Sequence record: OR258281.1
DNA length: 64,000 nucleotides
Reading direction: 5' to 3' (one strand)
Shown here: piece after piece, positions 1-64,000 of the stretch
Numbering within the stretch: position 1 is the stretch's first letter
Layout: each line of letters begins with the position of its first letter
Translations under genes and position numbers: made by a program
Notes under the pieces: model-generated
Told to the model about the DNA's origin: nothing
The model's database searches: none
What the model saw: the letters and a program-made list of their open reading frames with translations, nothing else

Positions 1-1
1 T

Positions 2-493
2 AAGAAAATCGTAATGGTTACACTGGCAGTACTGGCAATCTCTGCATGTGACGACAAAAAGCAACAGAATGTACAACAGCAGTACCCACAGAATCAACAG
101 GTGCAAAACCAGCAGTATCAAGATCAACAGCCACAGCAGGTATATGTACAGCAGCAGCCAGGACAGCAACCTGTAACTGTAATTAACCAGCAACCATCGC
201 ACGATAATGGTTTGGCAACTGCGGTGGTAGCAGGAGCAGCGGGTTATTACATGGGCCGGAACAGTAATAACTCAAATTATGATCGTAACCGTTATGATGA
301 CCGTGATCGTTCGTATAATAACCGTACTGTTAAGAACCGTACCGTAATTAATAACTATACAATTAATCAGGCTCCTAAACAGCAGAAGTCCAGTACTTAT
401 TACGGTTCAAGTTCAAAAAGTACTACATCCGTCTCAAGTTCTAGCTCTAAACCACGTAGTGTTTACAGCAAAGTATTCAACAAGAGACGTTAA
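2..493 (+). CDS. Putative lipoprotein with Gln/Asn/Ser-rich low-complexity segments, probably 5'-truncated
   Basis: The frame is open to the window edge (KKIVMVTLAVLAISA-C): basic N-terminus, hydrophobic stretch and lipobox-like Cys. Confidence 0.6.
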   Translation, partial: KKIVMVTLAVLAISACDDKKQQNVQQQYPQNQQVQNQQYQDQQPQQVYVQQQPGQQPVTVINQQPSHDNGLATAVVAGAAGYYMGRNSNNSNYDRNRYDDRDRSYNNRTVKNRTVINNYTINQAPKQQKSSTYYGSSSKSTTSVSSSSSKPRSVYSKVFNKRR

Positions 494-495
494 TT

Positions 496-915
496 ATGAC
501 TATTTTTAAAGTATGGCTAGTGTATGCTTTAATTCTAATAGGGTCTCTTTATGGTTGTTTTCATTTGATGCATAATGATCCAGATCGTATTGAACATCCA
601 TACACAATGAAGGTACTACGAATCATCCAGGAAGACCATAAATCAAGTACTAACTATCGCGGAGTATTTCAGATGGAAAGCGGTAAAGTAGTAGATTTTA
701 GTGTTACTGCGTCAGTATTCGTTAAGTACCAACCGGGTGATACTATTAGTTTTAACCTAAGTAACAGAGAACTAGGTATAGATAATAGTGAAAATAGTAC
801 CTATGCCTTTTTTGTTTTTATTTGGTGCTTTATTTTCGGATTTTTTGGTGCTGTATTAATAACTGAAAAAATTGAACCCAAAATTACAAGAAAACGACTG
901 TATAACAATAGATAA
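496..915 (+). CDS. Hypothetical membrane protein with two TM segments
   Basis: 139-aa ORF with N- and C-terminal hydrophobic helices, followed by a terminator. Confidence 0.6.
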   Translation: MTIFKVWLVYALILIGSLYGCFHLMHNDPDRIEHPYTMKVLRIIQEDHKSSTNYRGVFQMESGKVVDFSVTASVFVKYQPGDTISFNLSNRELGIDNSENSTYAFFVFIWCFIFGFFGAVLITEKIEPKITRKRLYNNR

Positions 916-918
916 CTT

Positions 919-949
919 AAAAAGGTACTCAAATTGAGTACCTTTTTTT
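919..949 (+). terminator. Rho-independent terminator
   Basis: aaaggtactc-aaatt-gagtaccttt followed by a T-run. Confidence 0.8.
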
Positions 950-967
950 ATTGGAGAAAATATAATA

Positions 968-2230
968 ATGAATCTGATTAAAGACTCTCGGGCATTAGTA
1001 ACTGTACGTACTATTAACAAAATTCTTCCTATTCCTGGTGCTGACTTTATTATGGAAGCACATATTGACGGATGGAGTTGTGTAGTAAAGAAAGATGAAT
1101 TCAAAGAAGGTGATTACTGTTTGTACTTCGAAATTGATTCATTCCTTCCGGCTAATGATCCTAAATTCCTGTTCCTTCGTAAAAATGGTGTAAAAACTGA
1201 TGATACTGGTGCAGAACGTATTCGTCTTCGTTCTATTAAACTTAAAGGTATCATTTCTCAAGGATTAGCACTTCCTTTAACGGTACTTGACGAACAAACA
1301 GTTCAAGAACTACTAATGGTAGTGGATTATAGTTCATATGATACTATTGATAATCATGCTATTGATGCAATGTATGAAGCACTGGAAACTGAACGTTATG
1401 GTATTGAAGAATTCCTGAACGTTACTAAGTACGAACGTCCAGACGAAAAGAATGGTGGTGCTGGTAATGCTAAAACTGCTGGTAATTTCCCATTAAGTAT
1501 TCCTAAAACCGACGAAGATCGTTTGCAGAACGTATATGGAACTCTTAGTACTCATTTTCAGGATGTTTATTTTCGTCCTAGTCTCAAGCTTGATGGTAGC
1601 AGTATTACTATTGGGTACTTCAGTGACCCGAGTTATTTCCTTACTAAGCTTGATGATGAAATGATTACGTACAATGAAGAAAAACAAGAACTAGAATGTA
1701 CTCCAATTCCATATCCTCATAATTATGGTACTTCTCAGGTAATTGTATGTTCACGTAATCTTGCGTTGAAGTACACACCTGAATCGCGGTTCTGGCAGGG
1801 AGTAAACAATAATGATCTTGCCACTCGCCTAAAAGAGTACTGTGAAGAATATGATGTACAACTTGCAGTACAGGGTGAACTAATGGGTCCGGGGATTCAG
1901 GGTAACCGTGAAAAACTGGAACAGTACGACATTTATGCATTCCGTATTTGGGATATTACTAATAAATGCTTCCTTGATGATAGTGAATTCATGGAGACAT
2001 GTACTAAATTGGGTATCAAAACTGTACCACAATATAATATTATTCAGCCTTTTATTGAGTACTCAAGCCTAAAAGAGTTTTTGGCTGCTTCTGATATTAA
2101 AAGTATCACGCATCCAATCGCTGAAGGTTTAGTATACAAGAGTATCAATAAAGTACTATATAAAGGTGTAATGCAAACACTGCACTTCAAAGTAATCAAT
2201 AATAAATTCCTACTGAAATGTGAGGATTAA
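968..2230 (+). CDS. ATP-dependent RNA ligase (DRB0094/Rnl2-like family)
   Basis: Nucleotidyltransferase motifs KLDG (motif I), QGELMGPGIQGN, EGLVYK and FKVINNKFLLK, plus the N-terminal extension typical of the family. Confidence 0.9.
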   Translation: MNLIKDSRALVTVRTINKILPIPGADFIMEAHIDGWSCVVKKDEFKEGDYCLYFEIDSFLPANDPKFLFLRKNGVKTDDTGAERIRLRSIKLKGIISQGLALPLTVLDEQTVQELLMVVDYSSYDTIDNHAIDAMYEALETERYGIEEFLNVTKYERPDEKNGGAGNAKTAGNFPLSIPKTDEDRLQNVYGTLSTHFQDVYFRPSLKLDGSSITIGYFSDPSYFLTKLDDEMITYNEEKQELECTPIPYPHNYGTSQVIVCSRNLALKYTPESRFWQGVNNNDLATRLKEYCEEYDVQLAVQGELMGPGIQGNREKLEQYDIYAFRIWDITNKCFLDDSEFMETCTKLGIKTVPQYNIIQPFIEYSSLKEFLAASDIKSITHPIAEGLVYKSINKVLYKGVMQTLHFKVINNKFLLKCED

Positions 2231-2232
2231 TT

Positions 2233-2457
2233 ATGTTAGTTACATATCTTGTGGTAGTAATGGGTGGTTATGCTAGTACTATTAACACAGTCCAAGTTCA
2301 ACCGTCTAAAGAAATTTGCGAAGCTGCTAAGACGATTCATTTAGAATTAGCACGACGAACACCAGCTTTTAGTTCTGAACGTGATATTAGTAAGCCTATC
2401 TTAGTTGAATGCAAAACTGTTGAAATACCTAAACCTTCAATGGAGTTAAAACCATGA
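2233..2457 (+). CDS. Small exported or membrane hypothetical protein
   Basis: Hydrophobic N-terminus, then S-K-E-I-C-E-A-A-K; similar layout to the next gene. Confidence 0.55.
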   Translation: MLVTYLVVVMGGYASTINTVQVQPSKEICEAAKTIHLELARRTPAFSSERDISKPILVECKTVEIPKPSMELKP

Positions 2458-2660
2458 TTAAAGTTATCTTTTTGGTGGCAGCTTTTTCTGGTCATAGTAC
2501 CAGTACTACAACTACTATGACACAAATGCCAGATATGGAAACATGTAAGAAAGCAGAACAAGTACTATACGATTTTAAACAAGAAAGAAAATCAACTTGG
2601 AGTGGTGCTTACCAGTTAGATGTTCAAGCACCTATTAAAACCAAATGCGTTGAATTATAA
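2454..2660 (+). CDS. Small exported or membrane hypothetical protein
   Basis: ATGA overlap with the previous gene; hydrophobic N-terminus, D-M-E-T-C-K-K-A and a C-terminal Cys. Confidence 0.55.
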   Translation: MIKVIFLVAAFSGHSTSTTTTMTQMPDMETCKKAEQVLYDFKQERKSTWSGAYQLDVQAPIKTKCVEL

Positions 2661-2669
2661 TTGTTACAC

Positions 2670-2696
2670 AAGGCACTCTTCGGGGTGCCTTTTTTT
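2670..2696 (+). terminator. Rho-independent terminator
   Basis: aaggcactc-ttcg-gggtgcctt followed by a T-run (UUCG loop). Confidence 0.85.
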
Positions 2697-2717
2697 ATAT
2701 AGTTTTGTAAAAACCTC

Positions 2718-2745
2718 TTGCATTCCCCGGCCCGTTTGATATTAT
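2718..2745 (+). promoter_or_regulatory. Sigma70-like promoter
   Basis: TTGCAT, 16-nt spacer containing TGn, then TATTAT, upstream of the HAD gene. Confidence 0.55.
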
Positions 2746-2782
2746 AAACACAACTTAAACGAAGTCTTAACGGGACAAAAAA

Positions 2783-3451
2783 ATGTCAATCAAACACCTG
2801 TCATTCGATGTATGGAACACCCTGATCACTCCTAACAAAGAATACGGTACTGAGCGTACTAAAGCTATTGCCCTTCATTTTGGCGTTACTGAGCAAGAAG
2901 CAAAAGACGCATATAAACAGTGTAAGAAGTTCCTTGATAACTGTGCTGAACTTGTTGGTTTCGGTATGTCATTAGAGAACAACTGGAAACTGTTAGAAAA
3001 AACTTTAGGTAAAAAAGATACCGATCTAAACGCTATCATCTCTGAATGTGATGAACTTTTCAAGGCGTATCAGCCAGCGTTTGATGATGAACTTAAAGAA
3101 GAACTGAAAGCATTAAAAGCAAAAGGATTTACTTTAAGTATCAAAAGTAATACCAATTTTATCAGTGGGAAAACACTGGCAACGGTACTATTCAATAGTT
3201 TAAATGTTTTCCAGTTCCAGCATTATTCAGATATGTTTGGTATTGCTAAACCTTCTATGAACTTTTATGTATTAAGTACTCATGAACTTTATAACAATCA
3301 CAATACACGTGATGTAGGTTGTACTAATATTTTACACATTGGTGATAATAAAATCACAGATGGTAAATGTATTGATATTGGTTGGAACTTTGAATATGTC
3401 AAAGGACCAGAAGAATTACTTCAGAAACTTAAAAATAACGAGATCGTATAA
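2783..3451 (+). CDS. HAD-superfamily hydrolase/phosphatase
   Basis: Motif I SFDVWNTL, motif II IKSNT, motif III AKP, motif IV HIGDNKITDG. Confidence 0.85.
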   Translation: MSIKHLSFDVWNTLITPNKEYGTERTKAIALHFGVTEQEAKDAYKQCKKFLDNCAELVGFGMSLENNWKLLEKTLGKKDTDLNAIISECDELFKAYQPAFDDELKEELKALKAKGFTLSIKSNTNFISGKTLATVLFNSLNVFQFQHYSDMFGIAKPSMNFYVLSTHELYNNHNTRDVGCTNILHIGDNKITDGKCIDIGWNFEYVKGPEELLQKLKNNEIV

Positions 3452-4266
3452 TGCGTAAAGACTACTCATACAGTGTTCATAAATTCAGTTCTCTGGAAAA
3501 CTGTTCTTTTGACCCTAAGATGTATTCATTTCTTAAATTTGGCTGCGATAAAGCTGCCCGAATGATGGGTTATGAACTGGCTGATTCGTTCTTTGCTGAT
3601 AATAAAAAAGAACTACTAGACCAGCGTTTAGTAGTAATTCCTTCTCCATATAATTATGTGAAGAACGCAGCAACAGTAATGTCAGAACACTTTGTTAACC
3701 GTTTGAATCATCATCTGGTACAAAATGGTTCTAATTCAGTCGAATGGGTAACTATTAATCGCAAAGTATCATATATCAAAGATTATGGTTTCCTTGATGC
3801 TGAGTCACGCCGTAAACTTATTGATGGCGACGAATTCTATTTCAGTACTGGATTCGTAGAAGGTAAAAAGCTTATTTTTATTGATGATGTATGCATTACT
3901 GGTACACATGAAGATAAATTAAAAGAAATTCTGGATAAGAACCACTTACAGAATGATTCATACTTCCTGTACTTTGCACAATATAATGGTTCACCGGGTA
4001 ATGCGAATATTGAAGGTGCACTTAACTTTAGTGGCGTAACTGGACTTGATGATTTTATTAAGCTAACTAAAGAAAAAGAACATCATGTAATTGTTCGTCC
4101 TATTAAGTACCTTATGGGTCAAGACCATTCGGTATTCAAAGATGTACTTGAACAATTACCACAGGAGTACTCAAAGAAATTATATAATGGTTGTTTGGCA
4201 GAAAACTATCATATGATAGATTCGTATAAAAACAATTTTGAGTACCTTAGTTCAAAATTTAATTAA
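3451..4266 (+). CDS. Type I phosphoribosyltransferase-like protein (resembles Ter-cluster PRTases)
   Basis: PRPP-binding loop LIFIDDVCITGTHE; translationally coupled to the HAD gene. Confidence 0.75.
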   Translation: MRKDYSYSVHKFSSLENCSFDPKMYSFLKFGCDKAARMMGYELADSFFADNKKELLDQRLVVIPSPYNYVKNAATVMSEHFVNRLNHHLVQNGSNSVEWVTINRKVSYIKDYGFLDAESRRKLIDGDEFYFSTGFVEGKKLIFIDDVCITGTHEDKLKEILDKNHLQNDSYFLYFAQYNGSPGNANIEGALNFSGVTGLDDFIKLTKEKEHHVIVRPIKYLMGQDHSVFKDVLEQLPQEYSKKLYNGCLAENYHMIDSYKNNFEYLSSKFN

Positions 4267-4270
4267 CAAC

Positions 4271-4296
4271 ATGGGATGCTAATGCATCCCATTTTT
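4271..4296 (+). terminator. Rho-independent terminator
   Basis: atgggatgc-taat-gcatcccat followed by a T-run. Confidence 0.8.
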
Positions 4297-4300
4297 ATTT

Positions 4301-4330
4301 TTGAAACGTTTTACGTATGTGTTCTATACT
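4301..4330 (+). promoter_or_regulatory. Recurrent phage promoter (TGAAAC-N17-TATACT)
   Basis: TGAAAC at 4302-4307 and TGTTC-TATACT ending at 4330; same layout at four other loci. Confidence 0.75.
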
Positions 4331-4390
4331 ATTCATACAATCAAGAAGTGAACAGCATCTAATCCAAATCCATTTCTGAAGGAAAAATAT

Positions 4391-5977
4391 ATGTCATTTA
4401 AGCAAGCAGTTAACAATTCACAATCATACGCTCCTAGCAATATTGCAAAAACCCATAACGGTGCTAATTCACTGAAAAGTACTAAGAATCCGGTTCTGGA
4501 CCTTTTTGCTATTGCTGCTGCTTTACGTGGAAAGCCATTCAATCAGTACGCTAGTACTTTTAATGCTGCATTTAACCACGATAAACGCCTCACTATGCAA
4601 CTTATTCTTTGGCTGCGTGATGTACGTGAGGGTGCCGGAGAACGTCAGACAGTGCGTGATATGCTTGTTTATATGCAGGATAACTATAAGCAAGATGCAC
4701 TTAAAATGATCCCAGTTCTTGCTGAATTTGGACGCTGGGATGACCTGTTAGTATTCACCGAATACGAATGTAAAGAACTGGCATACGATACCATTGTACA
4801 GGCTCTTAAATCCGGTAATGCACTTTGTGCTAAGTGGATGCCACGCCTGTATAAGATGAAAAAATCTAAAACAGTAACCAGTACTCAAACAATGCCAGGT
4901 ACATATGCACAGCCAGTTAAAACAACTACCGCTGTTGTGAATATGAACTCCCTATCTAACCAGAATCGTCGTAAGAATAATAAAATTGCTTATTCACTAA
5001 TGACCAAGTTGGGTATGAATGAAAAAGAGTACCGTAAACTTCTTTCTGGTTTAAGCAGTACGGTAGAACAGCAGATGTGTGCACGTGAATGGAATGCAAT
5101 TGAGTACTCAAAAGTACCTTCACTTGCAAGTACACGTTATCTGCCTGCATTCATGAAACATGATGAAACCCGGTATCGTGAATTCCTTGATGGTTTAGCT
5201 AAAGGTACTACTAAAATCAATGCATCAGTACTGTACCCATATGATGTAATGAAAAACCTAGTTGGTAGTCGTTATTCTAATCCAACTGCACAACAAGTAC
5301 AACTTGGTATTGCACAGTGGGACGGATTAAAGAATTTTATTGAAGATGCTAAAGTACTGCCTATGGTAGATACCTCAGCATCAATGAACCAGTATTCAAG
5401 TGGTGATACTGATCTAACCCCTAAATTTATGGCAGTATCATTAGGTTTATATATTGCTGATAAGCAGAAAGGTGCATTTAAAGATATGTTCCTGAACTTC
5501 AGTACTAAACCACAAGTTTTCCAGATCAAAGGTAATAATATTGCTGAAAAAGCATTTGATCTCGGTAATAACTATAATGGTCGTGAGTTTTGGGATGGAA
5601 GTACTAACTTAGTTGGTGCGTTTGATGAAGTACTTCGCATTGCAGTACAAAATAATCTTCCAGCAGAAGATATGCCTGATAGTATGATTGTATTCAGTGA
5701 TATGGAATTTAACAATAATAATTCTGCATGGGGTACTACTCCATTCAAGATAGTTAAATCTAAATTCGAACAAGCTGGTTATAACTTACCTAAAGTTATT
5801 TTCTGGAATCTGAATGGTCGTGCTGGTAACAATCCAGTTTCCAGTACTGATACTGGTGTAGTTATGGTAAGTGGATTCAGTACTAACGTATTGAAAACTG
5901 TACTTGGAGTACAAATAGCATCACCTGAACAGGCGATGATGGAAACAATTGATGTAGAACGTTATCAGGTATTCTGA
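4391..5977 (+). CDS. DUF2828-family (TROVE-like plus vWA) protein
   Basis: LWLRDVREGAGER, EFGRWDDL, CAKWMPR, VEQQMCAREW, YSKVPS, MIDAS-like MVDTSASM, VFSDMEF, IFWNL and VMVSGFS. Confidence 0.85.
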   Translation: MSFKQAVNNSQSYAPSNIAKTHNGANSLKSTKNPVLDLFAIAAALRGKPFNQYASTFNAAFNHDKRLTMQLILWLRDVREGAGERQTVRDMLVYMQDNYKQDALKMIPVLAEFGRWDDLLVFTEYECKELAYDTIVQALKSGNALCAKWMPRLYKMKKSKTVTSTQTMPGTYAQPVKTTTAVVNMNSLSNQNRRKNNKIAYSLMTKLGMNEKEYRKLLSGLSSTVEQQMCAREWNAIEYSKVPSLASTRYLPAFMKHDETRYREFLDGLAKGTTKINASVLYPYDVMKNLVGSRYSNPTAQQVQLGIAQWDGLKNFIEDAKVLPMVDTSASMNQYSSGDTDLTPKFMAVSLGLYIADKQKGAFKDMFLNFSTKPQVFQIKGNNIAEKAFDLGNNYNGREFWDGSTNLVGAFDEVLRIAVQNNLPAEDMPDSMIVFSDMEFNNNNSAWGTTPFKIVKSKFEQAGYNLPKVIFWNLNGRAGNNPVSSTDTGVVMVSGFSTNVLKTVLGVQIASPEQAMMETIDVERYQVF

Positions 5978-5984
5978 TTTATAT

Positions 5985-6010
5985 AAGGCCAACATTGTTG
6001 GCCTTTCTTT
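5985..6010 (+). terminator. Rho-independent terminator
   Basis: aaggccaac-att-gttggcctt followed by tcttt. Confidence 0.75.
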
Positions 6011-6022
6011 ATGGAGAAATAT

Positions 6023-6166
6023 ATGAAAAAAATGGTTCGGGATTCACTCTTTAGTGCGGCCTTGATGGTACGTACTTCATATGATATTAATCCAGTACAG
6101 ACATGTCTGTTAGTAATTGTCAGTACTATATTCTTAGGTTCTATTATTGGTATCTTCCTTGGATAA
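6023..6166 (+). CDS. Small membrane protein (47 aa, not in the ORF track)
   Basis: GGAGA Shine-Dalgarno, then MKKMVRDSLF...LLVIVSTIFLGSIIGIFLG*; fills the gap between terminator and next gene. Confidence 0.55.
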   Translation: MKKMVRDSLFSAALMVRTSYDINPVQTCLLVIVSTIFLGSIIGIFLG

Positions 6167-6169
6167 CAA

Positions 6170-6673
6170 ATGAAAGTCAAAACTTCATATTCTATTAGAA
6201 ATAAAACCACTGGACTTTATAGTACCGGTGGTGTTAGCCCTAAGTTTTCGCACAACGGTAAAGTATGGTCGCAGATTGGTCATGTAAAAGCACATTTACT
6301 AAAAATTACTGACCTTGAATTTTATAAGGATAGTGAGATTGTGGAAATGGTAGAAAAAGTAAATGAACCTAATGATTGTACTTTACAAAAATATCAGGAA
6401 CATGCCAGGTTAGTGCGTAATGATGACGGTGCGATTGGGTCATTGTTGCGTAATTTTGTTAAAACTGGTGCTTGTTATACTGATGAGCTACGTGATCTGA
6501 TTACAAATGAGAATCATCCGAAACGGGAACTGGCAGAGCGTTTTGTTCCTCATCAAATGATTGATAAGTTTGAAGTTTATCACAACAAGGGAATACGTGA
6601 TTGCACACCCGAGGAATTGGGTGCTATTATCTTGACAGCCACTGAGCGGCAGATTAAGATATATAAACTGTAA
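6170..6673 (+). CDS. Hypothetical protein
   Basis: 167-aa ORF with phage-like codon usage and co-directional packing. Confidence 0.65.
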   Translation: MKVKTSYSIRNKTTGLYSTGGVSPKFSHNGKVWSQIGHVKAHLLKITDLEFYKDSEIVEMVEKVNEPNDCTLQKYQEHARLVRNDDGAIGSLLRNFVKTGACYTDELRDLITNENHPKRELAERFVPHQMIDKFEVYHNKGIRDCTPEELGAIILTATERQIKIYKL

Positions 6674-6690
6674 CGCATATCCCAATGATT

Positions 6691-6698
6691 TATAAATA
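6691..6698 (+). promoter_or_regulatory. T4-like late promoter TATAAATA
   Basis: Exact T4 late consensus upstream of the lysozyme-HPF operon. Confidence 0.7.
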
Positions 6699-6818
6699 AA
6701 AAACATCATAGAAATATGGTTGGGGTCCAAGTAAGCTAGTACTTAGCTGTATGGACTAAAACATGTAGGCCATACGTGTACTAGCACTTGATAATAGTAA
6801 TTATGAAGTGGAGGTTCC

Positions 6819-7802
6819 GTGGAGATAGCTACACAAGGAACAAAAAACCCGAATGCTGTGTGTCTAGGGTTTATGATACTTGCGATGGCGATTGGAAATG
6901 TAATACATGGTTTCAACTTAAGTGATCGTACTGCGTCATTAGACTCAATAGAGTCAGCGGTACAGCAATCAGAATCTGAGCTACAGAAGATTCAACTGAA
7001 ATCAATTTCAAAGCCAGTATTGAAAATTCAAGATTCCCCGAAACAAATAAAGGAATCTGAACGAGTACAATATGAAGTGAAACTAGGTGATAATATTTGG
7101 GATATTGCCAAAATTATTAAACCTGAGAATGTTCTTATCAATGATTATGTAAGTATACTTAGTACTGTTAATAAAGGTAAAGTACTTTTACCTGGTGCTA
7201 TGATAGATGTACCTAATACAGAAGATTTGAAAGGCGTCTCACTTCCTAATGTAGATATTCTTTTTGAATTAAGCGATCCTGAGCTACTTTCAAATATCAA
7301 AGAAGCCGAAGGTACTATTCAATTACAATCAGTGATGAAGCGTAAGTTACTTGGTGGGAAATATGGTCCCGCTTTCCGTAATAAGAAGTTTTATCCTTAT
7401 CAAGATTCTCATGGTAACTGGACTATCGGGTACGGTCATTTCTTGGGTACTTCACGTGAAGTACAAAAAGCAAGAAAGTACAGTTCTGGTATTACAGTAC
7501 GTCAGGCAAATGAGTTTCTAAGTTCTGATATGGAATATGCGTACAATGATTTTGTACTCATGTTACAACAGAAAAAAGCAGTAGGTTTGCCACCAGACGT
7601 ACAGAAAGCTTTGTACGAAATGACCTTTAATATGGGTTCTGGTAAGGTAAAGGATTTTAAACGTATGTGGAAATCTCTTAACAAGGGAAATTACCTGAGA
7701 GCATCTAAGGAAATGAAAAATTCCGGCTGGGCTAAACAGGTAGGTGATAGAGCTACACGTATTGTGGATCTTGTTGCTGCCAGCCACATCAACAATTCGT
7801 AA
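6819..7802 (+). CDS. Endolysin-like muramidase: N-terminal hydrophobic anchor, LysM-like domain, T4-lysozyme (GH24)-like domain
   Basis: GTG start after GGAGGT. YEVKLGDNIWDIAK is LysM-like; EAEG...YQDSHGNWTIGYGH, EMTFNMG and WAKQVGDRATR match phage lysozymes. Confidence 0.85.
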   Translation: MEIATQGTKNPNAVCLGFMILAMAIGNVIHGFNLSDRTASLDSIESAVQQSESELQKIQLKSISKPVLKIQDSPKQIKESERVQYEVKLGDNIWDIAKIIKPENVLINDYVSILSTVNKGKVLLPGAMIDVPNTEDLKGVSLPNVDILFELSDPELLSNIKEAEGTIQLQSVMKRKLLGGKYGPAFRNKKFYPYQDSHGNWTIGYGHFLGTSREVQKARKYSSGITVRQANEFLSSDMEYAYNDFVLMLQQKKAVGLPPDVQKALYEMTFNMGSGKVKDFKRMWKSLNKGNYLRASKEMKNSGWAKQVGDRATRIVDLVAASHINNS

Positions 7803-7811
7803 GGGGAGTTT

Positions 7812-8201
7812 ATGGAAATTAGTGTTTACGGTCATAAAGTACAAGTAACGGATGCAATTAAGGAACATATTGATTCTCAGTTCAAAAAACTTGAGAAATT
7901 TGGTTCTTTTATTACTTCAATTAATGTAGTACTTGAAGTACGTAATGAAGAACATATTGCTAAATGTACGGTTAAAGTACCCCACCAGCATGACATTCAT
8001 GCGGAAAGTACCAGTACTGATATGTATAACAGTATCGATTCAGTAGTCACCAAAACAGAACAACAGTTGCGTAAGGTAAAAGGCATTATTGCCAGCAAGA
8101 CGCACACCAAAGACCCTTCAGCCAAGCTACAAGCTGCTATGAATGAAGCAGATGATATTGCTGACAATCATCGAACATATGACGATGATGAAGACGAATA
8201 A
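7812..8201 (+). CDS. hpf: Ribosome hibernation promoting factor (HPF/RaiA, S30Ae family)
   Basis: ISVYGHKVQVTDAIKEHIDSQFKKL...DMYNSIDSVVTKTEQQLRK matches the short HPF fold; acidic tail. Confidence 0.9.
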   Translation: MEISVYGHKVQVTDAIKEHIDSQFKKLEKFGSFITSINVVLEVRNEEHIAKCTVKVPHQHDIHAESTSTDMYNSIDSVVTKTEQQLRKVKGIIASKTHTKDPSAKLQAAMNEADDIADNHRTYDDDEDE

Positions 8202-8209
8202 TTAAAACT

Positions 8210-8237
8210 AAGGACAGTACTTGCTACTGTCCTTTTT
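8210..8237 (+). terminator. Rho-independent terminator
   Basis: aaggacagta-cttgc-tactgtcctt followed by a T-run. Confidence 0.85.
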
Positions 8238-8257
8238 ATTTTCATAGGATTCAAATA

Positions 8258-8431
8258 ATGATTACTAAATTAAAGACAATTGATGAATTTACTAAAGAAG
8301 AATTATTTAAATTCTATGAGGAAATTCGCACACAAGAAACTTATGTCTTCAATGGTGATTCTGTAGTACCTAACGAACACCTTCTTGATGATATTGAATA
8401 CTTAGTAAAAGATATGGAAAAGCAAAAATGA
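8258..8431 (+). CDS. Small hypothetical protein (57 aa, not in the ORF track)
   Basis: AGGA upstream; MITKLKTIDEF...EKQK*; ATGA overlap with the next ORF. Confidence 0.55.
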   Translation: MITKLKTIDEFTKEELFKFYEEIRTQETYVFNGDSVVPNEHLLDDIEYLVKDMEKQK

Positions 8432-8568
8432 TCCTAGTACTTGAAGAAAATTGGGGAGTTAGTGACCAAGGTACTGATGATTATATCTTCCCTGAATATT
8501 CAGACTCTGAATCTTCTTGGTACGATAGACTTAAAAAATTTATTGGTGATATTCTATTCGGGAGTTAA
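8428..8568 (+). CDS. Small hypothetical protein (46 aa, not in the ORF track)
   Basis: Coupled ATGA start; MILVLEENWG...ILFGS*; ends 2 nt before cca. Confidence 0.5.
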   Translation: MILVLEENWGVSDQGTDDYIFPEYSDSESSWYDRLKKFIGDILFGS

Positions 8569-8570
8569 AG

Positions 8571-9692
8571 ATGAAAAAGAAATATATCGTAGGTGGATTT
8601 TGCCGTGATAAACTGATGGGATTAAAACCAAAAGATAAAGATTGGTTACTCGTTGGTTATAACGAATGGGATGTTAAACAACTTATTATCAATGGCTATC
8701 AACAAGTTGGTGCAGACTTCCCTGTATTCCTTTCTCCAGCAGGAGAAGAACATGCTTTAGCTCGAATTGAACGTAAGGATGGTACTGGTTATGGCGGCTT
8801 TGAAGTACAAACTAAAAACGTTACTTTAGAGCAGGACTTGTTACGCCGGGACTTTACTATTAATGCTATCTGTTATGATCCAGTAAAAAAGGAATATATT
8901 GATCCTTATGGTGGACAAATTGATATTAAAAACAAATTGCTTCGACATGTATCGGATGCATTTAAAGAAGACCCATTAAGGGTACTTCGCCTAGCACGCT
9001 TCCTTGCACGTCTTCCTGATTTTAAAGTACATCCAAGTACTGATGAAATGGTTCGTGATATGGTGAAGAATGGTGAGATCGATCACCTCACTAAAGAACG
9101 TGTTTATGTGGAGTTCGAAAAAGCATGTACTGAAAAAGCACCAAGTATATTTTTCAAGTACCTTAATGATATTAATGCATTACAAGTACTGTTACCTGAA
9201 TTCAAATGCACACAGGTAAATCAGAAACGCATAGATAATATTGCAAAAAACTGTACTGAAGCATTTACCCCGGATTTTATCTGGACCGTTCTTCTTGAGA
9301 AAATGGATCTAAGTAAAATCAAAGGTGGTAATATCGGTAAGATGAAAGTACCAGTTCATTTGATTAAATTCGCAAATACAGTACAGAAACATTCTGATAG
9401 TATTACTAAGTTCAGAAAACTAAAACCAATAGAAATGGTTGAGTTGTTTGACTCTATGAATGTTAAAAACTTAGGTGGTGAAGACTTCCTTTATAAGTTC
9501 TGTGAGTACTTTATTTTGAATAAAGAACTTGATATTGAACATGAAGATTTGATCATTAAGGTATACGATACTTATATTGGTACTGACTTATCTGAGATCC
9601 AAGAAAAGCAACAGAATGGAGATATTACAGGTTTAGAAGCCCGTGATATGGTACGTGAATTGCGTCTTAAACGTGTATCTAAGATGTTTTAA
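8571..9692 (+). CDS. cca: Class II tRNA nucleotidyltransferase (CCA-adding enzyme)
   Basis: YIVGGFCRD, DKD catalytic DxD, DLLRRDFTINA, EDPLRVLRLARF and KERVYVE; no HD phosphatase domain. Confidence 0.9.
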   Translation: MKKKYIVGGFCRDKLMGLKPKDKDWLLVGYNEWDVKQLIINGYQQVGADFPVFLSPAGEEHALARIERKDGTGYGGFEVQTKNVTLEQDLLRRDFTINAICYDPVKKEYIDPYGGQIDIKNKLLRHVSDAFKEDPLRVLRLARFLARLPDFKVHPSTDEMVRDMVKNGEIDHLTKERVYVEFEKACTEKAPSIFFKYLNDINALQVLLPEFKCTQVNQKRIDNIAKNCTEAFTPDFIWTVLLEKMDLSKIKGGNIGKMKVPVHLIKFANTVQKHSDSITKFRKLKPIEMVELFDSMNVKNLGGEDFLYKFCEYFILNKELDIEHEDLIIKVYDTYIGTDLSEIQEKQQNGDITGLEARDMVRELRLKRVSKMF

Positions 9693-9696
9693 TTTG

Positions 9697-9726
9697 TTGA
9701 AACATTTTTAAATAATGTTCTATACT
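9697..9726 (+). promoter_or_regulatory. Recurrent phage promoter (TGAAAC-N17-TATACT)
   Basis: TGAAAC at 9698-9703; TGTTC-TATACT ending at 9726. Confidence 0.75.
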
Positions 9727-9758
9727 AATATCATCTAAGACTATCTGAGAATTTAATC

Positions 9759-10190
9759 ATGCGTCATTCGTGTGGAATTATCTTTTATAAGAATGGTCAG
9801 ATATTAGTTGGACATGCTACGGGTCAGGAACATTGGGACTTACCTAAAGGTAAAACTGAAGAAGGTGAAACATTTAAACAAGCTGCTATTCGTGAGTGTG
9901 ACGAAGAGATTGGGTTTAATGCACTGGAAGAGAATTTAATACTTTTAGGTGAGGTTTCGTATCGTAAAGGAAAAAGATTAGTACTATTCTTTTATGCATC
10001 ACGTAACGTTCCTGATGTGGATGACTGTACCTGTAAAAGTACTTATACCAATCGTTATGGTCAGAATAAACCTGAGTTTGACGAATTCAAGTACATTGAT
10101 GTTCAGGATTGTACTGAATATTTGACTGCTAGAATGTGCAAAAGTATTTGTGCCGCCGTGGAGATTTATAAACAAGGAATAGAAAAATGA
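9759..10190 (+). CDS. NUDIX hydrolase
   Basis: Nudix box GKTEEGETFKQAAIRECDEEIG. Confidence 0.9.
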   Translation: MRHSCGIIFYKNGQILVGHATGQEHWDLPKGKTEEGETFKQAAIRECDEEIGFNALEENLILLGEVSYRKGKRLVLFFYASRNVPDVDDCTCKSTYTNRYGQNKPEFDEFKYIDVQDCTEYLTARMCKSICAAVEIYKQGIEK

Positions 10191-10429
10191 GTTATGAAGT
10201 TAAAATTTATGGTCGTGTAAAAGGCTGTCGTTTTTGTGATACCGCAAAACAAATCTGTGAAATGAATGAATACAAAATGGAATTCATCGATGTTGAAGCA
10301 GAAGGCATTGACGGCCCTAAACTACAGGAAATCTGTGGTGAGCCAGTTCGTACTGTACCACAAATCTTTGTTGATGGTAAGTATATTGGTGGTTGTGATA
10401 AGTTTATTGAGTTTTTAAAAGGAGAATAA
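10187..10429 (+). CDS. Glutaredoxin
   Basis: CRFC active site and TVPQIFVDGKYIGGCD. Confidence 0.9.
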   Translation: MSYEVKIYGRVKGCRFCDTAKQICEMNEYKMEFIDVEAEGIDGPKLQEICGEPVRTVPQIFVDGKYIGGCDKFIEFLKGE

Positions 10430-10430
10430 A

Positions 10431-10862
10431 ATGTTGTTTCAACAGATCAAGGAAGATCGTATGAAGCACTTAGGAAAAGACAGTGTTTCATTTAGTATTC
10501 TAGGATTAGTAATTTCTGAAATTCAGCGAACTACATTAAGTGATGATGTACCCGATGCACAGGTAGTAAAAGTGATTAAGAAACTTAATCAGGGAATTGA
10601 AGAGTCACTATTAGAATTTTGTAAGCATAATGATATTTCTTCAGAAACGGCATTAAAGCTTGTCAAAGAACGTGACACACTTACTTCTTACCTTCCTAAA
10701 CAATTAAGTACTGAAGAACTTACCGAAATCATGCGTAATGTTGCTGAAGAATTTCCAGAATATAAAACAAACAAAGGTGCAATGTTCAAGTTCTTAAAAA
10801 GTAACTATGATTCATTGTATGACGGAAAATCTGCTAACGAGATCTATGGAAAATTATGGTAA
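10431..10862 (+). CDS. GatB/YqeY-domain protein
   Basis: LFQQIKEDRMK...VISEIQ...VVKVIKK...ERDTLTSYLPKQLSTEEL...KGAMFK...YDGK pattern. Confidence 0.75.
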   Translation: MLFQQIKEDRMKHLGKDSVSFSILGLVISEIQRTTLSDDVPDAQVVKVIKKLNQGIEESLLEFCKHNDISSETALKLVKERDTLTSYLPKQLSTEELTEIMRNVAEEFPEYKTNKGAMFKFLKSNYDSLYDGKSANEIYGKLW

Positions 10863-11197
10863 TTAAAGAATTAGGCGATGATATTAATCCGTATATTTGC
10901 AATGATGCAAATCGATACGCATTGAAGTTCACCCATTATACAATTGACGGTACTAAGTACCGTGACTTACAAGAAAAACAGTTCGAAAAGCGTCAGCGTC
11001 TATTAAAAATGGCTGAAGCTGCTGGTGTAGTACTGAAAGAAACTAATGTACAACAAGTAATTGAACGTACTGAAGCCCGTCTTGAATATCTTCGTAATAA
11101 AGACACGTATGATGCTATTTTTGGTGAAGCATTGAAGTCACTTGAACCTCATGAAATCGCCCAATATCTTGAAAACCATATAAAAAATAAATCCTAA
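10856..11197 (+). CDS. Hypothetical protein
   Basis: 113-aa ORF overlapping the previous stop codon. Confidence 0.6.
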   Translation: MVIKELGDDINPYICNDANRYALKFTHYTIDGTKYRDLQEKQFEKRQRLLKMAEAAGVVLKETNVQQVIERTEARLEYLRNKDTYDAIFGEALKSLEPHEIAQYLENHIKNKS

Positions 11198-11268
11198 ATA
11201 ATTATGAAGTACTTCGTAATGTACTTTAATAGTACAAAGTACTTCATATTCTATAATTTAATTTAGGA
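11192..11268 (+). promoter_or_regulatory. Late promoter CTAAATA inside an SD-sequestering hairpin
   Basis: TCCTAAAT (11192-11199) pairs with ATTTAGGA (11261-11268); inner stem tatgaagtactt/aagtacttcata. Confidence 0.6.
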
Positions 11269-11276
11269 GAATTTGT

Positions 11277-11531
11277 ATGCTTAGTTTACGTGAAAGATTA
11301 GCTCAAGGCGTTGTTGATTTCTCAGAGAAAGTAGTAGATGTTCCAAAGAAATCAGAATTTTTAGGTTTGATTACTGAAGATGGTTATTGTGATTACAATG
11401 TACCTGAAGAAGATAAATCATACATTGAAAAGGATAATACAAAGGCAATGAGAATGCAAAGTAGTACACGTGCTCGGAAGCATCGCCAAGAACTCAGAAA
11501 ATTCAGAACATCTGGAAATTCTGGTCATTAA
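11277..11531 (+). CDS. Hypothetical protein, probably monocistronic and late
   Basis: AGGAGA Shine-Dalgarno; basic C-terminus; flanked by a late motif and a terminator. Confidence 0.65.
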   Translation: MLSLRERLAQGVVDFSEKVVDVPKKSEFLGLITEDGYCDYNVPEEDKSYIEKDNTKAMRMQSSTRARKHRQELRKFRTSGNSGH

Positions 11532-57300: not shown

Positions 57301-57322
57301 AGGATTCTCCTTATATATGTTG

Positions 57323-57329
57323 TATTTAT
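57323..57329 (-). promoter_or_regulatory. Late promoter motif ATAAATA
   Basis: Back-to-back with the clpA promoter. Confidence 0.6.
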
Positions 57330-57331
57330 TT

Positions 57332-57361
57332 TTGAAACACCTGCTGAATGTGTCCTATACT
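57332..57361 (+). promoter_or_regulatory. Recurrent phage promoter (TGAAAC-N17-TATACT)
   Basis: TGAAAC at 57333-57338; TGTCC-TATACT ending at 57361. Confidence 0.75.
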
Positions 57362-57403
57362 AAAGAAGCTAGGTTTATACCGAATTTTAAACAGGAGCAA
57401 TAA

Positions 57404-59757: not shown

Positions 59758-62700
59758 TTATTTTTGTTTTAGTAAATCGCCAACTGTACTAACTGACAAT
59801 CCTTTAGTATAAACATCTAAACCAATAGGATTAAACATATCTGAATAGTACTCGAATTTAACATTCGGCCCTAAGTTAGCTGCTAGAACATTATAAGTAG
59901 TACCTTTAACATAGTTTCTTTCGATACTGTTGTAAAGTCCTCTTAACATATATCCATTTCGGATTTCGACAACTTCTGAGTTAACAGAAATCACATCACC
60001 CTCACTAACATTTCCAGATTGAACTACATTATTAATTACTTCAATATTTTCTATACTGTGCGGTGCACCAACATAGTATTTCTCTAGGTTCTTAATCATG
60101 TATGTCAATTTAGCCGGGACTGAATCAATATAAACACCATCCACTACATTTCCTGTATGTTTCCATACAGAATTAGTATTGTCATAAACAGGCTTAACTA
60201 CTGCACTGTCATATTCATAAATGAATATTTGCAATTCTTCTTGTCCCACAATACGAACTAGTTCGCTTAGAGCACCTTTACCATAAACTGGCTGATAGAA
60301 ACCATGATCTACTTCATTACCTTCAGGATCAGTACCATACTCGTTAGATGTATACCACAAATCAACTTCATCAGTACCGAATGCACTAGAAGATATAGTT
60401 CTGTCATAGAAAACATCGTAATCCATGCTGGCTATACTATATTTTCTTGAAGTACTATACAATGTTCCAGTACTTGGACTGAATGACGCATCATTGAAGT
60501 TAACAACACGAACTACAGATATACTTGTACCATAAGATGAACGAATATAATCAGCATTTTTGGAACTGTATGTATTAGCGAAAGATAAACCACCAATACG
60601 AACGTTATTACCAGATACTGAAGATACGGTGAAGATTTTAGGTCTATTTTGGTTCTTAATAACAGATGCATTCATGATTAATGTTTTAGTACCATCAACC
60701 TTAGCTTCGTAATAGTCATCAGTATCTGGTAAGAATACTGCAACACGATCACCAGTTTTAAGGTTATGATTAGGAATAGTAACAGTACCAGTTTTGTTAA
60801 CAATATCGCTTACACGATGGATGTAACGTATTTCTGTTCTGTTAAAATTCATTTTATCTAGGTACTGTAACGCTTCATCATACTTAGGTATACTTACTAG
60901 TACTTCTTTAAGATTGTAAGGGTTTTGTAGTACTAGACCTTCAATCTGGAAGTTACCAAAGTCACGTAATGCAGTGTTATCTGGAGTTTCAAAACCATAT
61001 CCATCTACAGTAAATCGTAAGTTAGCTACATCACGACCTTCTGGATTAATATCAGAAATATCAATAAAGATGGGGTCTTGAGTACTGTTAACTACGCCAC
61101 TTGCTTTCTGTTCTACAATATTGTACTGTGATTCTAAAGCTAGATTATCAAATGAGTTCATATCATCGACATATTCATTTGAATTTTTAGAACTTTGTAC
61201 CAAAGACAGAACTTCACTATATAGTGGATTGCTATCATCTACCGGTAAATCATCTAGGCTGATTTCATTAAGAATCCAAACTTCGTTATCCTTAATTGCC
61301 TGTGCTTCCATAAACTCATCAAGACCAGTTCCCATAGGGACAGTGTAGTTAACACCTGTTTCCTGATTAGTTACCGAAACATATTTTCTTGGTACAAGTA
61401 CCATGCAATACGAATCTACAGTTGGAGTACTTAATATTGCCTTAGCAACATCATAAGAATCAACATCACCAGTTACATAGTTGTTAAGCATTCCTGCTAG
61501 TACATAATATGTATCGGTATAGTATCTTCCGTTACTATCCATATCCTGAGTCCAAGAATATAAACCATATTCATAACTTAGGTACTGCATAACTTCATCC
61601 TCAGAGAATGCAGGATTAGCTTTTAGCACTAAATCTTTGAACTGATTGTATAGGCTTTCGGATTTAAGGATATATCCTTTGTTCATATCAGGTTCAGCAC
61701 TGAAACCGAACGGTAAACGACTATTTGGATTATCGTTTAATACAATACCTTTAAATGGACAGTTAACGTCATATCCAATTGTTTCGTTTGTTTTATTAGT
61801 ATACAAACTTAGGCGGTTAGCCAAGGTATTGTACTGAATGTACTGCGTTGCTTCCTTGATACCGGAATCTGCTTTATACGCTTCATTTAGAAGAACGGTA
61901 AGATCAGTAGTGAACTGTTCAGTACCTTCAATATCATCTTTTAGAGTAACATAAGCATCGTTGATAGCATCTACATAACCTAAGTTAGTGTTAATAAAAT
62001 CATATTTTGCTTTCAATGAATACAATACTGATGATGTTGCAGAACTTGTATCAACAACTGGAGTACTGAACTTAAAACGTTGAAGTTTAAAGTGATTACC
62101 AGTACCTAATACATCCTGAGAAGTACTTTGATACTTTTTATTCACAGCTTCTAACGCAAGTACAGAATCTAGTTCATCTGGAGTACATTGTACGTTATCA
62201 AATACTAGAATCTCATTACTTTCCTGGAAAGGTCTCTGAGGTTCAACGAAATCACTAGGTAGAGAACCAGTGGTTACATACTTTTCCTGAATTTCGTCGT
62301 ATTGTGCGTATTCATAATCCCAAATATCTTTCTCTACTTTGATCCATGAGCCATTTTCGAAAACATAACCGTTAGGACCAAGATCGTTGGAGATACCATT
62401 AATTTCATCTTCATCAGAAGTTTTCTGTTCAATCTGAGAACGAATTTTAGTTCTGTAAGGTTTAACTTCTTCAAAGTACTCAACAATCTGATTAATTAAA
62501 TCATCTTGTTGTAGGTAATTTTTCTGTAATGGTTGTTCTAAACCAACCACGAAGATATAAGAGGTTTTATAAACCCAATCTACCACATTTTGTTCAACGT
62601 GTACATACTTAACCATATCAAACACCATTCTACTCTGAACAGTATCGAAGGTACTTTTTAGTAAAGTAATTGCCTGACGAACATTTTTCTCAATTGCAGT

Positions 62701-64000
62701 TTCTGCACCAGTACTATCATACTGATTATATCCACTGAAGAGTTTTTCATTCATTTTGATTGTACTATTCTGACGACCAACAGCCTGCCATAGTAGTTTA
62801 TTACGTGATACTGTTTTAACATATAGTGTCCAGATACCATCTGAACCAGTAACACGAATACAATCACCTTCCTGATAGTTTTTCTGGTCTGCAATGTCAG
62901 TACTGGTTTCAACTGTAAATTCAGTACTATCATTATAACCATTACTATACCAATCAGTTAGTGACCAGTACTGAGTCATATCTAAATCAGTACCTAGACT
63001 AGAAACATAATCTGCCTGTTTGATAATACTGTGTTTACCAACACCAAGATCAGAAATTGTAATCGGAACAACATTACCATCTGAGCTTGCAGTACGCATT
63101 AACTGTATATAACCTTCATCAGTAATATGTACGAAGTAAACATCAGTATTTGTTAACGGAGATGGCAGTTCACCAGTGGTACTTACCAGAACTGTATCGT
63201 TTTCAACAAATGCTTTATCAGAAACACTAAGAACGTATTGGTTATTATAACTAATAACTTTGAATAACTTCTGGTTAGGGTTAACTTTATTAGTTTTAAC
63301 ATTAAACACAGAGTCCATCAGGACAGTATCAGTAGTAATGTTGATAGTCTTATAAATGCGGTTCATTGCTGAAACGAATTCACGACGAGCTTCCATTACG
63401 TCCATGAACCAAGTTTTATTAGGTTCACAACCAAGTAAAGTACTTGGGTACTGAATTACATTCACTTTATCTTCATCTAATTGTTCTTCACAAGTTAGTG
63501 AGTTGAATAGTGAATTCCAGATATTCGGATTGAAGTTATAATCCATACCTTCTTTACATAACTGGAACTGTTCGTGCTTAACTACTTCAGTTTTATCTTC
63601 CTGATAGTTAATAGTCAGAACACTTTTATCATCAGTAACTAAAGTTTCCTTTGAATTGATGATGAATGAATTACTATCTACCGGAGCGAACCATGGAACA
63701 TTTAGTTCAGATGGATCTTGAAGTGCACGTGCAATTTCATTGATTGTTTTGTTTCTAGAACTAATTTTCGGTACGTATATTGCATTCTGAACCCAAAAAT
63801 AGTAGAATGTTTTATAAGATGAAGTACTTTCATCCCATTCTTCAAATTGTGACCAGTCATCCTGAACAGCAGTACCACTTGGAACCCATGAAGAAGGATC
63901 TTTGTTTAGCTTCTGCTGGATATTACAATATTTTTCCCATTCCAGCGGTGATTTTGGAGATTTAACCCACTCATATACTACAATCTCACCATCCGGTAGT
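59758..64000 (-). CDS. C-terminal part (>1400 aa) of a giant virion structural protein, baseplate-wedge-like
   Basis: Translating upstream of the track ATG (63546) shows no stop up to the window edge (…WFAPVDSNSFII…HEQFQLCKEG MDYNFNP), so the gene starts outside the window. Confidence 0.75.
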   Translation of the reverse strand, partial: LPDGEIVVYEWVKSPKSPLEWEKYCNIQQKLNKDPSSWVPSGTAVQDDWSQFEEWDESTSSYKTFYYFWVQNAIYVPKISSRNKTINEIARALQDPSELNVPWFAPVDSNSFIINSKETLVTDDKSVLTINYQEDKTEVVKHEQFQLCKEGMDYNFNPNIWNSLFNSLTCEEQLDEDKVNVIQYPSTLLGCEPNKTWFMDVMEARREFVSAMNRIYKTINITTDTVLMDSVFNVKTNKVNPNQKLFKVISYNNQYVLSVSDKAFVENDTVLVSTTGELPSPLTNTDVYFVHITDEGYIQLMRTASSDGNVVPITISDLGVGKHSIIKQADYVSSLGTDLDMTQYWSLTDWYSNGYNDSTEFTVETSTDIADQKNYQEGDCIRVTGSDGIWTLYVKTVSRNKLLWQAVGRQNSTIKMNEKLFSGYNQYDSTGAETAIEKNVRQAITLLKSTFDTVQSRMVFDMVKYVHVEQNVVDWVYKTSYIFVVGLEQPLQKNYLQQDDLINQIVEYFEEVKPYRTKIRSQIEQKTSDEDEINGISNDLGPNGYVFENGSWIKVEKDIWDYEYAQYDEIQEKYVTTGSLPSDFVEPQRPFQESNEILVFDNVQCTPDELDSVLALEAVNKKYQSTSQDVLGTGNHFKLQRFKFSTPVVDTSSATSSVLYSLKAKYDFINTNLGYVDAINDAYVTLKDDIEGTEQFTTDLTVLLNEAYKADSGIKEATQYIQYNTLANRLSLYTNKTNETIGYDVNCPFKGIVLNDNPNSRLPFGFSAEPDMNKGYILKSESLYNQFKDLVLKANPAFSEDEVMQYLSYEYGLYSWTQDMDSNGRYYTDTYYVLAGMLNNYVTGDVDSYDVAKAILSTPTVDSYCMVLVPRKYVSVTNQETGVNYTVPMGTGLDEFMEAQAIKDNEVWILNEISLDDLPVDDSNPLYSEVLSLVQSSKNSNEYVDDMNSFDNLALESQYNIVEQKASGVVNSTQDPIFIDISDINPEGRDVANLRFTVDGYGFETPDNTALRDFGNFQIEGLVLQNPYNLKEVLVSIPKYDEALQYLDKMNFNRTEIRYIHRVSDIVNKTGTVTIPNHNLKTGDRVAVFLPDTDDYYEAKVDGTKTLIMNASVIKNQNRPKIFTVSSVSGNNVRIGGLSFANTYSSKNADYIRSSYGTSISVVRVVNFNDASFSPSTGTLYSTSRKYSIASMDYDVFYDRTISSSAFGTDEVDLWYTSNEYGTDPEGNEVDHGFYQPVYGKGALSELVRIVGQEELQIFIYEYDSAVVKPVYDNTNSVWKHTGNVVDGVYIDSVPAKLTYMIKNLEKYYVGAPHSIENIEVINNVVQSGNVSEGDVISVNSEVVEIRNGYMLRGLYNSIERNYVKGTTYNVLAANLGPNVKFEYYSDMFNPIGLDVYTKGLSVSTVGDLLKQK

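Follow-up and report, generated by a model that had tools for sequence, protein, structure and literature searches.

The stretch of DNA analysed here (64,000 nucleotides, referred to as the window) corresponds to bases 124001–188000 of Xanthomonas phage XaC1 (OR258281.1), a jumbo myovirus with a genome of 348,967 bp, and our subject is its large excess of the short palindrome GTAC, especially in the form AGTACT. Window bases 1–20000 matched XaC1 at 100% identity by sequence search, and the whole window is identical to the record. It holds 68 annotated genes, with functions that include tail, neck, tail-fibre, and nucleotide metabolism. The excess runs across positions 1–64000 with no strand assigned (731 GTAC and 204 AGTACT sites) and was assessed by counts, shuffles, and ranks within codon phases. 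It is real and robust, and we found no report of it for these phages in the literature searched.

GTAC was the most over-represented 4-mer in the window and AGTACT the most over-represented 6-mer, the other leading 6-mers being GTACTG/CAGTAC and GGTACT/AGTACC. The 731 copies of GTAC (11.4 per kb) compare with 215 expected from zero-order base composition and 505 expected under a maximal-order Markov model (z 14.2), and the 204 copies of AGTACT with 22 expected. Each 2-kb bin of the window contained between 15 and 42 GTAC. Phages usually avoid short palindromes because of restriction. An earlier note on this DNA had counted 33 GTAC and 8 AGTACT in the first 2160 bases and had claimed an excess throughout the window, on both strands, in regulatory hairpins as well as genes, and opposite to palindrome avoidance; our recount returned exactly these numbers, and every part of the claim was borne out. 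Across the whole XaC1 genome (sequence joined from seven pieces), GTAC occurred 3941 times compared with 1123 expected (observed-to-expected ratio, O/E, 3.5) and AGTACT 1356 times compared with 118 (O/E 11.5). Density peaked at the genome ends (1–40 kb and 340–349 kb; O/E 5–5.6), which are early regions of small open reading frames (ORFs).

The hairpins cited by the earlier note are real; all of them fold far better than shuffled controls, and each contains GTAC. On the plus strand, terminator-like hairpins lie at 916–950, with GTAC in both arms (AAAAAGGTACTCA...TGAGTACCTTTTT; −15.4 kcal/mol, z −6.7), at 8205–8240, with AGTACT in the 5' arm (−13.1 kcal/mol, z −5.2), and at 14358–14395, again with GTAC in both arms (−16.5 kcal/mol, z −5.2). 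An intergenic nested palindrome at 11198–11255 on the same strand contains four GTAC (−19 kcal/mol, z −6.05). Another intergenic region (29218–29340, plus strand) has three GTAC by sequence, one of them inside a promoter-like TGTACTATACT box.

The local peak of GTAC density, 42 per kb, is a tandem repeat at 23346–23853 (plus strand). Its 48-nt unit carries four GTAC and encodes VKSTPVQQPVQPSTSA, and a 255-nt unit is present in two copies with 97% identity. The repeat supplies about 30 of the 731 sites, which leaves the overall picture unchanged. It takes in the last part of XaC1_281 and the greater part of XaC1_282. The annotation treats these as two genes that overlap; they may be a single gene with internal repeats or the product of a recent duplication.

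Bases next to GTAC showed symmetric preferences in the window, with A at −1 in 56% of sites and T at +1 in 54%, together with avoidance of G at −2 and C at +2 (consensus H-A-GTAC-T-D). GGTACC and CGTACG had zero copies. The two flanks were independent of each other, as the AGTACT count was no higher than the counts of AGTAC and GTACT predict. Judged from sequence, symmetric and independent flank preferences would fit palindromic recognition. The spacing of sites was geometric (median 66 bp compared with 67 bp expected; largest gap 779 bp), and we found no helical phasing and no preferred pair or dimer spacing, only the 3-nt coding period.

Part of the pattern follows the coding frame. The xGT ACx phase holds 406 of 710 coding GTAC (57%), the codon pair AGT ACT (Ser-Thr) accounts for 137 of 198 coding AGTACT (69%), and codon usage alone predicts more GTAC than base composition does (340 compared with about 207). 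The earlier note had expected the excess to disappear under shuffles that preserve amino acids and codon usage if coding content were its source; it persisted. Shuffling synonymous codons within genes gave 481 ± 13 GTAC compared with 710 observed (z 17.5) and 75 ± 7 AGTACT compared with 198, and permuting codons within genes gave 340 GTAC (z 23). All three codon phases were enriched (208, 406, and 96 sites compared with 151, 289, and 42 expected), and among the 256 words GTAC ranked first in two phases and second in the third, after AGTA. Non-coding XaC1 DNA, taken as the 31 kb not covered by a simple ORF call, was at least as enriched as coding DNA. There GTAC was the top word, with 416 copies compared with 94 expected (4.4–4.55 fold), and AGTACT had 174 copies compared with 10.5 (16 fold).

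Distribution among related phages and avoidance of other palindromes

XaC1 is one of several related jumbo phages that share the excess. Conserved genes of GAP32, CBB, XbC2, EJP2, Hallingskeid, and fHe-Yen9-04 have about 74–75% nucleotide identity to those of XaC1. In samples of 30–49 kb per phage, taken for relatives and outgroups alike, GTAC had an O/E of 1.7–2.6 in GAP32, XbC2, CBB, fHe-Yen9-04, EJP2, Hallingskeid, 121Q, TH47, and RaK2, and AGTACT had an O/E of 5.8–10 across the same nine. The GTAC-rich genera include Mimasvirus (GAP32, XbC2, and CBB), Eneladusvirus (fHe-Yen9-04), Asteriusvirus (121Q and TH47), and Alcyoneusvirus (RaK2), with XaC1 at the extreme of the clade. In the outgroups PA5oct, XacN1, Atu_ph07, and T4, the O/E of GTAC was 0.36–0.99 and AGTACT was nearly absent; XacN1, which lacks the excess, is another Xanthomonas jumbo phage. 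The GTAC excess is thus a trait of one clade, a synapomorphy independent of host. A search for tail-sheath relatives in IMG/VR gave no match.

Other palindromes are strongly depleted in the same genomes. GCGC is missing from XaC1 (0 compared with 327 expected genome-wide, and 0 compared with 71 in the window), and it had zero copies in every sampled member of the GTAC-rich clade and only there, being normal in T4, PA5oct, and Atu_ph07. This ban across hosts of different orders suggests a phage-encoded GCGC nuclease directed against host DNA, or a very widespread host enzyme. Among palindromic hexamers, 23 of 64 are absent from the XaC1 genome, where 10–34 copies of each are expected, and the median O/E is 0.48. 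GGTACC and CGTACG are among the absent hexamers, which include the sites of PstI, PvuII, XhoI, SacI, SphI, NheI, BamHI, KpnI, SalI, SmaI, and StuI; CGATCG and TGGCCA have one copy each. Of the 15 palindromic 4-mers other than GTAC, 14 have an O/E of at most 1.26, and TGCA has 1.64. Restriction-site avoidance does not apply to GTAC, which is over-represented while GCGC and the 23 hexamers are missing.

From its word content, XaC1 appears to behave as unmodified DNA under intense restriction avoidance, and the absence of GCGC and of these hexamers makes it plausible that selection acts efficiently on short words here. Several words differed among lineages. TGCA had an O/E of 0.29 in XbC2 and 1.5–2.2 in all other clade members, TTAA had 0.34–0.39 in EJP2 and Hallingskeid, and CCGG had 1.26 in XaC1 and 0.2–0.4 in most relatives; the differences resemble traces left by host restriction enzymes that vary among lineages. 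Also near-absent from the XaC1 genome is a non-palindromic pair, GATGTC/GACATC (4 and 3 copies compared with about 64 expected).

GTAC in early promoters and in encoded proteins

GTAC occupies fixed positions in early promoters of two genera. A sigma-70-type promoter recurs in the left 32 kb of XaC1 and consists of AAAAGTAC(C)TTGCAA, a 17-nt spacer ending GGGTACTT, TATAAT, and GTACTTA. GAP32, with core proteins about 53–57% identical to their XaC1 counterparts, has early promoters built in the same way (AAAAGTACTTGCAA ... GAGTACTTTATAAT), and the layout shared by both phages is an A-tract, GTAC, TTGCAA, a 17-nt spacer ending GTACTT, TATAAT, and often GTACTTA. We compared the early promoters in genome positions 1–32000 of XaC1 (n = 28) and 1–22000 of GAP32 (n = 19). 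In 20 of 28 XaC1 promoters and 10 of 19 GAP32 promoters, GTAC began exactly 6 nt ahead of the −10 hexamer. At the −35 hexamer, 14 of 28 and 11 of 19 promoters had GTAC no more than 8 nt upstream, in most cases with its start 4–5 nt from the hexamer. GTAC followed the −10 box in 13 of the 28 XaC1 promoters. Among 23 promoter-like matches elsewhere in XaC1, none had GTAC at these positions. The fixed position is the best hint, at the level of sequence, that something may bind GTAC or sense its state. At 3.7 kb in XaC1, three AGTACTTAAAA repeats stand in 11-bp phasing.

The density of GTAC is maintained while individual sites turn over between relatives. When orthologues from different genera were aligned codon-wise (about 52–57% amino-acid identity), XaC1 shared GTAC positions with GAP32 or XbC2 1.8–1.9 times as often as expected under independence, and this positional conservation was no greater than that of other 4-mers (percentile 43–46, about the median). 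At conserved dipeptides, 27–42% of the sites capable of GTAC used it, with retention and gain both high, the pattern expected of a word kept at a high equilibrium frequency instead of in set places.

The pressure for GTAC is strong enough to alter amino-acid sequences. In XaC1, Val-(Leu/Pro/His/Gln/Arg) and (Ser/Gly/Cys/Arg)-Thr dipeptides were 1.43 and 1.48 times as frequent as in amino-acid shuffles (z about 20). GTAC-capable dipeptides were enriched about 1.5 fold in RaK2, compared with 0.9–1.07 in T4 and PA5oct. Of the capable Val-X and X-Thr dipeptides, 61% and 78% were written with GTAC in XaC1, compared with 8–27% in outgroups.

Candidate causes of the GTAC excess

We used non-coding XaC1 DNA and simulations to compare selection with mutation bias. 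None of the twelve one-step neighbours of GTAC was depleted (O/E 0.86–1.43), including the candidate donors ATAC/GTAT (0.92) and GCAC/GTGC (1.43). In simulations where only GCAC/GTGC to GTAC was accelerated, GTAC rose at most about 2.1 fold and donors fell to 0.1–0.2; where only ATAC/GTAT to GTAC was accelerated, an analogue of very-short-patch (VSP) repair, 3.6 fold was attained only with donors at 0.25–0.3. Over all runs with donor-specific bias, donors were at 0.1–0.55. A 4-fold fixation advantage for any change creating GTAC gave a 3.9-fold excess with neighbours at 0.8–1.1, as observed. Because donors are not depleted, these simulations disfavour donor-specific mutation bias, and a fixation bias for GTAC fits. 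The options that remain are natural selection or allele-independent biased conversion, for which we know of no mechanism. Site-cutting nucleases, as homing and recombination-hotspot biology indicate, drive the loss of their sites, not the gain.

The fixation bias acts on DNA and not on codons, genome-wide and over all one-letter neighbours alike, and it is inherited by one clade whatever the host. We hold with moderate confidence that GTAC, preferably as AGTACT, is a double-stranded DNA word kept dense in this clade by that continuing bias, most likely natural selection, and read by a clade-specific factor. The marks of a selected word are present: an excess beyond composition and coding, in genes and in spacers, a density kept despite turnover, and an imprint on encoded peptides. 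What recognises the word could be a phage-encoded protein peculiar to the clade and probably dimeric, or an enzyme that modifies DNA at specific sites. Such a factor would label or coat the otherwise unmodified phage DNA as 'self'. It might do so by weakening a nuclease, much as Chi does, or by shielding the DNA physically, and each added site would bring a small benefit. The same factor may occupy the GTAC boxes of early promoters. The earlier note had offered three causes, of which a phage DNA-binding or organising protein would fit best; polymerase or mutational bias is disfavoured (no donor depleted, and the simulations), and a GTAC methylase found no supporting gene.

A more specific version is tentative, and we regard it as doubtful. 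Here AGTACT/GTAC would be a phage-encoded 'self' word, read at about one site per 90 bp by a protein of the clade of RaK2, GAP32, 121Q, and XaC1 that tells ordinary phage DNA from host DNA, acts as an orientation-free, Chi-like attenuator of phage or host nucleases or as a protective coat, and switches off early promoters. The missing GCGC would be the counterpart to this word, the sequence at which a phage nuclease attacks and destroys the DNA of the host.

Known systems resemble parts of this pattern. Uptake sequences (the uptake signal sequence, USS, of Haemophilus and the DNA uptake sequence, DUS, of Neisseria) are likewise short words at high density genome-wide, in and between genes, with turnover at constant density and a measurable peptide imprint. 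However, they are 9–12 nt long, non-palindromic, found in cellular genomes, read by a protein, and driven by biased uptake and recombination, whereas GTAC is a 4–6-bp palindrome in a lytic phage clade with no reader or drive known. Chi (the attenuator of RecBCD/AddAB) and KOPS (FtsK-orienting polar sequences) are over-represented words that mark 'own' DNA for a processive machine, with a benefit that comes from density and not from exact position. They are polar, 5–8 nt long, and host-specific, while GTAC is palindromic, works in either orientation, and is conserved across phages of hosts from different orders, so any reader must be phage-encoded. Phage restriction-site avoidance is the same kind of selection on short palindromes, very strong in XaC1 but opposite in sign for GTAC/AGTACT. 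The GATC sites of Dam in regulated promoters (P1, Mu mom, and IS10) are, like GTAC, 4-bp palindromes in or beside the −35 and −10 boxes, a placement that could couple promoter activity to DNA modification or occupancy, although GATC is not enriched genome-wide there.

Several points weigh against a selected word that is read by a clade-specific factor. No GTAC-recognising protein was found, and when unknown proteins encoded in the window were scanned against Pfam and PHROG, no DNA-binding or nuclease candidate emerged. XaC1 has two annotated methyltransferases, XaC1_104 and XaC1_538. XaC1_104, a Dam-family enzyme (PF05869), is kept in every GTAC-rich genus including RaK2 (47–55% identity), usually adjoining a cytidyltransferase gene, and no other methyltransferase is shared by the whole clade. 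However, GATC is the target of M.Phi93DAM from Lactococcus phage phi93 (45% identity), the closest characterised homologue that we found, and further enzymes of the family are reported to be GATC-specific or non-specific (PMC3299994). Late promoters (ATAAATA) lack a positioned GTAC: only 4 of 34 have one that begins 7 nt before the box, and a regulatory role, if there is one, would not extend beyond the early promoters. Early promoters, in turn, may be paralogous copies, which would inflate the positional conservation seen inside a single genome but not that seen between XaC1 and GAP32. Present data do not separate selection from allele-independent biased conversion. Young mutations in Asteriusvirus (121Q, PBECO4, and EC22.5-2, with TH47 as outgroup) comprised 9 gains and 5 losses of GTAC under a scripted criterion and 16 gains and 9 losses in a parsimony re-tally, where events are few and mosaic recombination confounds.

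Modification of GTAC itself is an unlikely alternative. By this account GTAC would be methylated or carry a larger adduct, every modified copy would protect the DNA around it against host nucleases or CRISPR (clustered regularly interspaced short palindromic repeats), and selection would raise the count; a benefit that grows with the number of sites also fits turnover at constant density. XaC1 DNA is reported to be NdeI-resistant and RaK2 DNA to be methylated (PMC11273794, PMC3622015). The XaC1 study observed cutting by EcoRI and no cutting by NdeI or EcoRV, from which its authors inferred DNA modification. NdeI resistance is not explained by scarcity of sites, since CATATG occurs 162 times in the XaC1 genome and 24 times in the window; for EcoRV, GATATC has 27 copies in the genome and 3 in the window, and fragments would average about 13 kb. 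No enzyme behind the NdeI resistance was found. Ten enzymes cut Asteriusvirus fEgEco12 normally, and their recognition sites include neither GTAC nor RTAY. These published digests are compatible with a site-specific modification and do not demonstrate one, and the literature searched contained no RsaI or ScaI digest.

On the other side, no gene for GTAC methylation or hypermodification was found, and the genome purges restriction sites as unmodified DNA would. XaC1_104 is unconvincing as a GTAC methyltransferase given its GATC-methylating homologue, and the matches of XaC1_538 are weak and generic. The thymidylate synthase in the window (31712–32626, plus strand) is a canonical ThyA equivalog by protein family match, which points to ordinary thymine and makes thymine hypermodification based on 5-hydroxymethyl-deoxyuridine unlikely. 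A deoxynucleotide monophosphate kinase (14416–15102, plus strand), examined as a possible marker of non-canonical nucleotides, gave no evidence for them.

A mutational or repair bias that makes GTAC is improbable. It would take the form of a context-dependent polymerase error or a VSP-like conversion of GTAT/ATAC or GTGC/GCAC, and it would account for an excess that is genome-wide, Poisson-like, independent of position, and strongest where constraint is weakest, in non-coding DNA and in the small ORFs of the early regions. The precedent is CCWGG in Escherichia coli, the excess of which is attributed to Vsr repair. CCWGG resembles GTAC as a palindromic word over-represented genome-wide beyond codon usage, and it is a methylase site. 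However, VSP repair depletes its donors CTWGG and CCWAG, while no GTAC donor is depleted, the fold excess of GTAC surpasses that of CCWGG by a wide margin, and the annotation lists no Vsr- or Dcm-like gene. Neither a Vsr-like endonuclease nor a cytosine-5 methyltransferase is annotated among the 550 XaC1 proteins, about 77% of which are hypothetical and not all of which were scanned. The absent GCGC and the mildly enriched GTGC/GCAC look superficially like a deamination series (GCGC to GTGC/GCAC to GTAC), which the undepleted donors and the simulations, where a GTAC excess of 2.1–3.6 fold left donors at 0.1–0.3, rule out. Mutation bias also leaves GTAC at fixed early-promoter positions across genera unexplained, and we know of no mutational mechanism that favours GTAC equally over all 12 neighbours.

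The excess could instead be a passive result of purging other palindromes, with GTAC the sole palindrome that host restriction enzymes do not target. The depletion of palindromic hexamers and the low O/E of 14 of the 15 other palindromic 4-mers are consistent with this, but we consider it very improbable. Release from avoidance yields an O/E near 1, not 3.5 or 11.5, displaced sequence would go to non-palindromic words, and GTAC is below 1 in T4, PA5oct, and Atu_ph07. The proteome imprint and the promoter positions would also be left unexplained.

We give next to no credence to a by-product of Ser-Thr, Gly-Thr, and Val-Leu dipeptides combined with a preference for AGT, ACT, GGT, and GTA codons, which is ruled out by both shuffles, the per-phase ranks, and the stronger excess in non-coding DNA, and since the dipeptide excess is clade-specific and not seen in T4 or PA5oct, the dipeptides are an effect and not a cause.

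A clade of 350-kb phages that avoids palindromes to an extreme yet enriches one up to 11-fold, altering its proteins, points to an unrecognised sequence-reading function, which could be self-marking, protection, or genome-wide regulation. The group is widely isolated and is considered for therapy and biocontrol (121Q/PBECO4-like coliphages, GAP32, CBB, RaK2, and XaC1). GTAC should be considered whenever these phages are recoded or engineered and when their sensitivity to restriction is predicted.

Other features of the window and of related genomes

The window also contains a second promoter type, TTGAAAC ... TGT(T/C)CTATACT without GTAC, in the intergenic regions 4267–4390, 9693–9758, 26296–26442, and 57301–57403. 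It matches the divergent promoters with a 'TGAAACG' −35 box described for CBB and GAP32.

The gene at 27838–29217, annotated as 'HNH endonuclease', matches DUF2201_N (putative metallopeptidase) and a VWA-like domain, not HNH. The gene that precedes it (26443–27771) has weak matches to AAA-type ATPases. Together they resemble a module of a MoxR-type ATPase plus a VWA protein, and the pair is retained throughout the clade.

The E. coli Chi octamer, GCTGGTGG, has 21 copies in XaC1 on both strands, compared with about 2 expected, and two words contained in it, CTGGTG and TGCTGG, rank with the leading hexamers of the relatives. This excess may reflect only CTG-GTG codon usage. Two Escherichia phage records, EC22.5-2 (OR845138) and ECO103 4-12-1 (OR844650), are identical across the 48.8 kb compared and equal in total length, and are probably one phage deposited twice.

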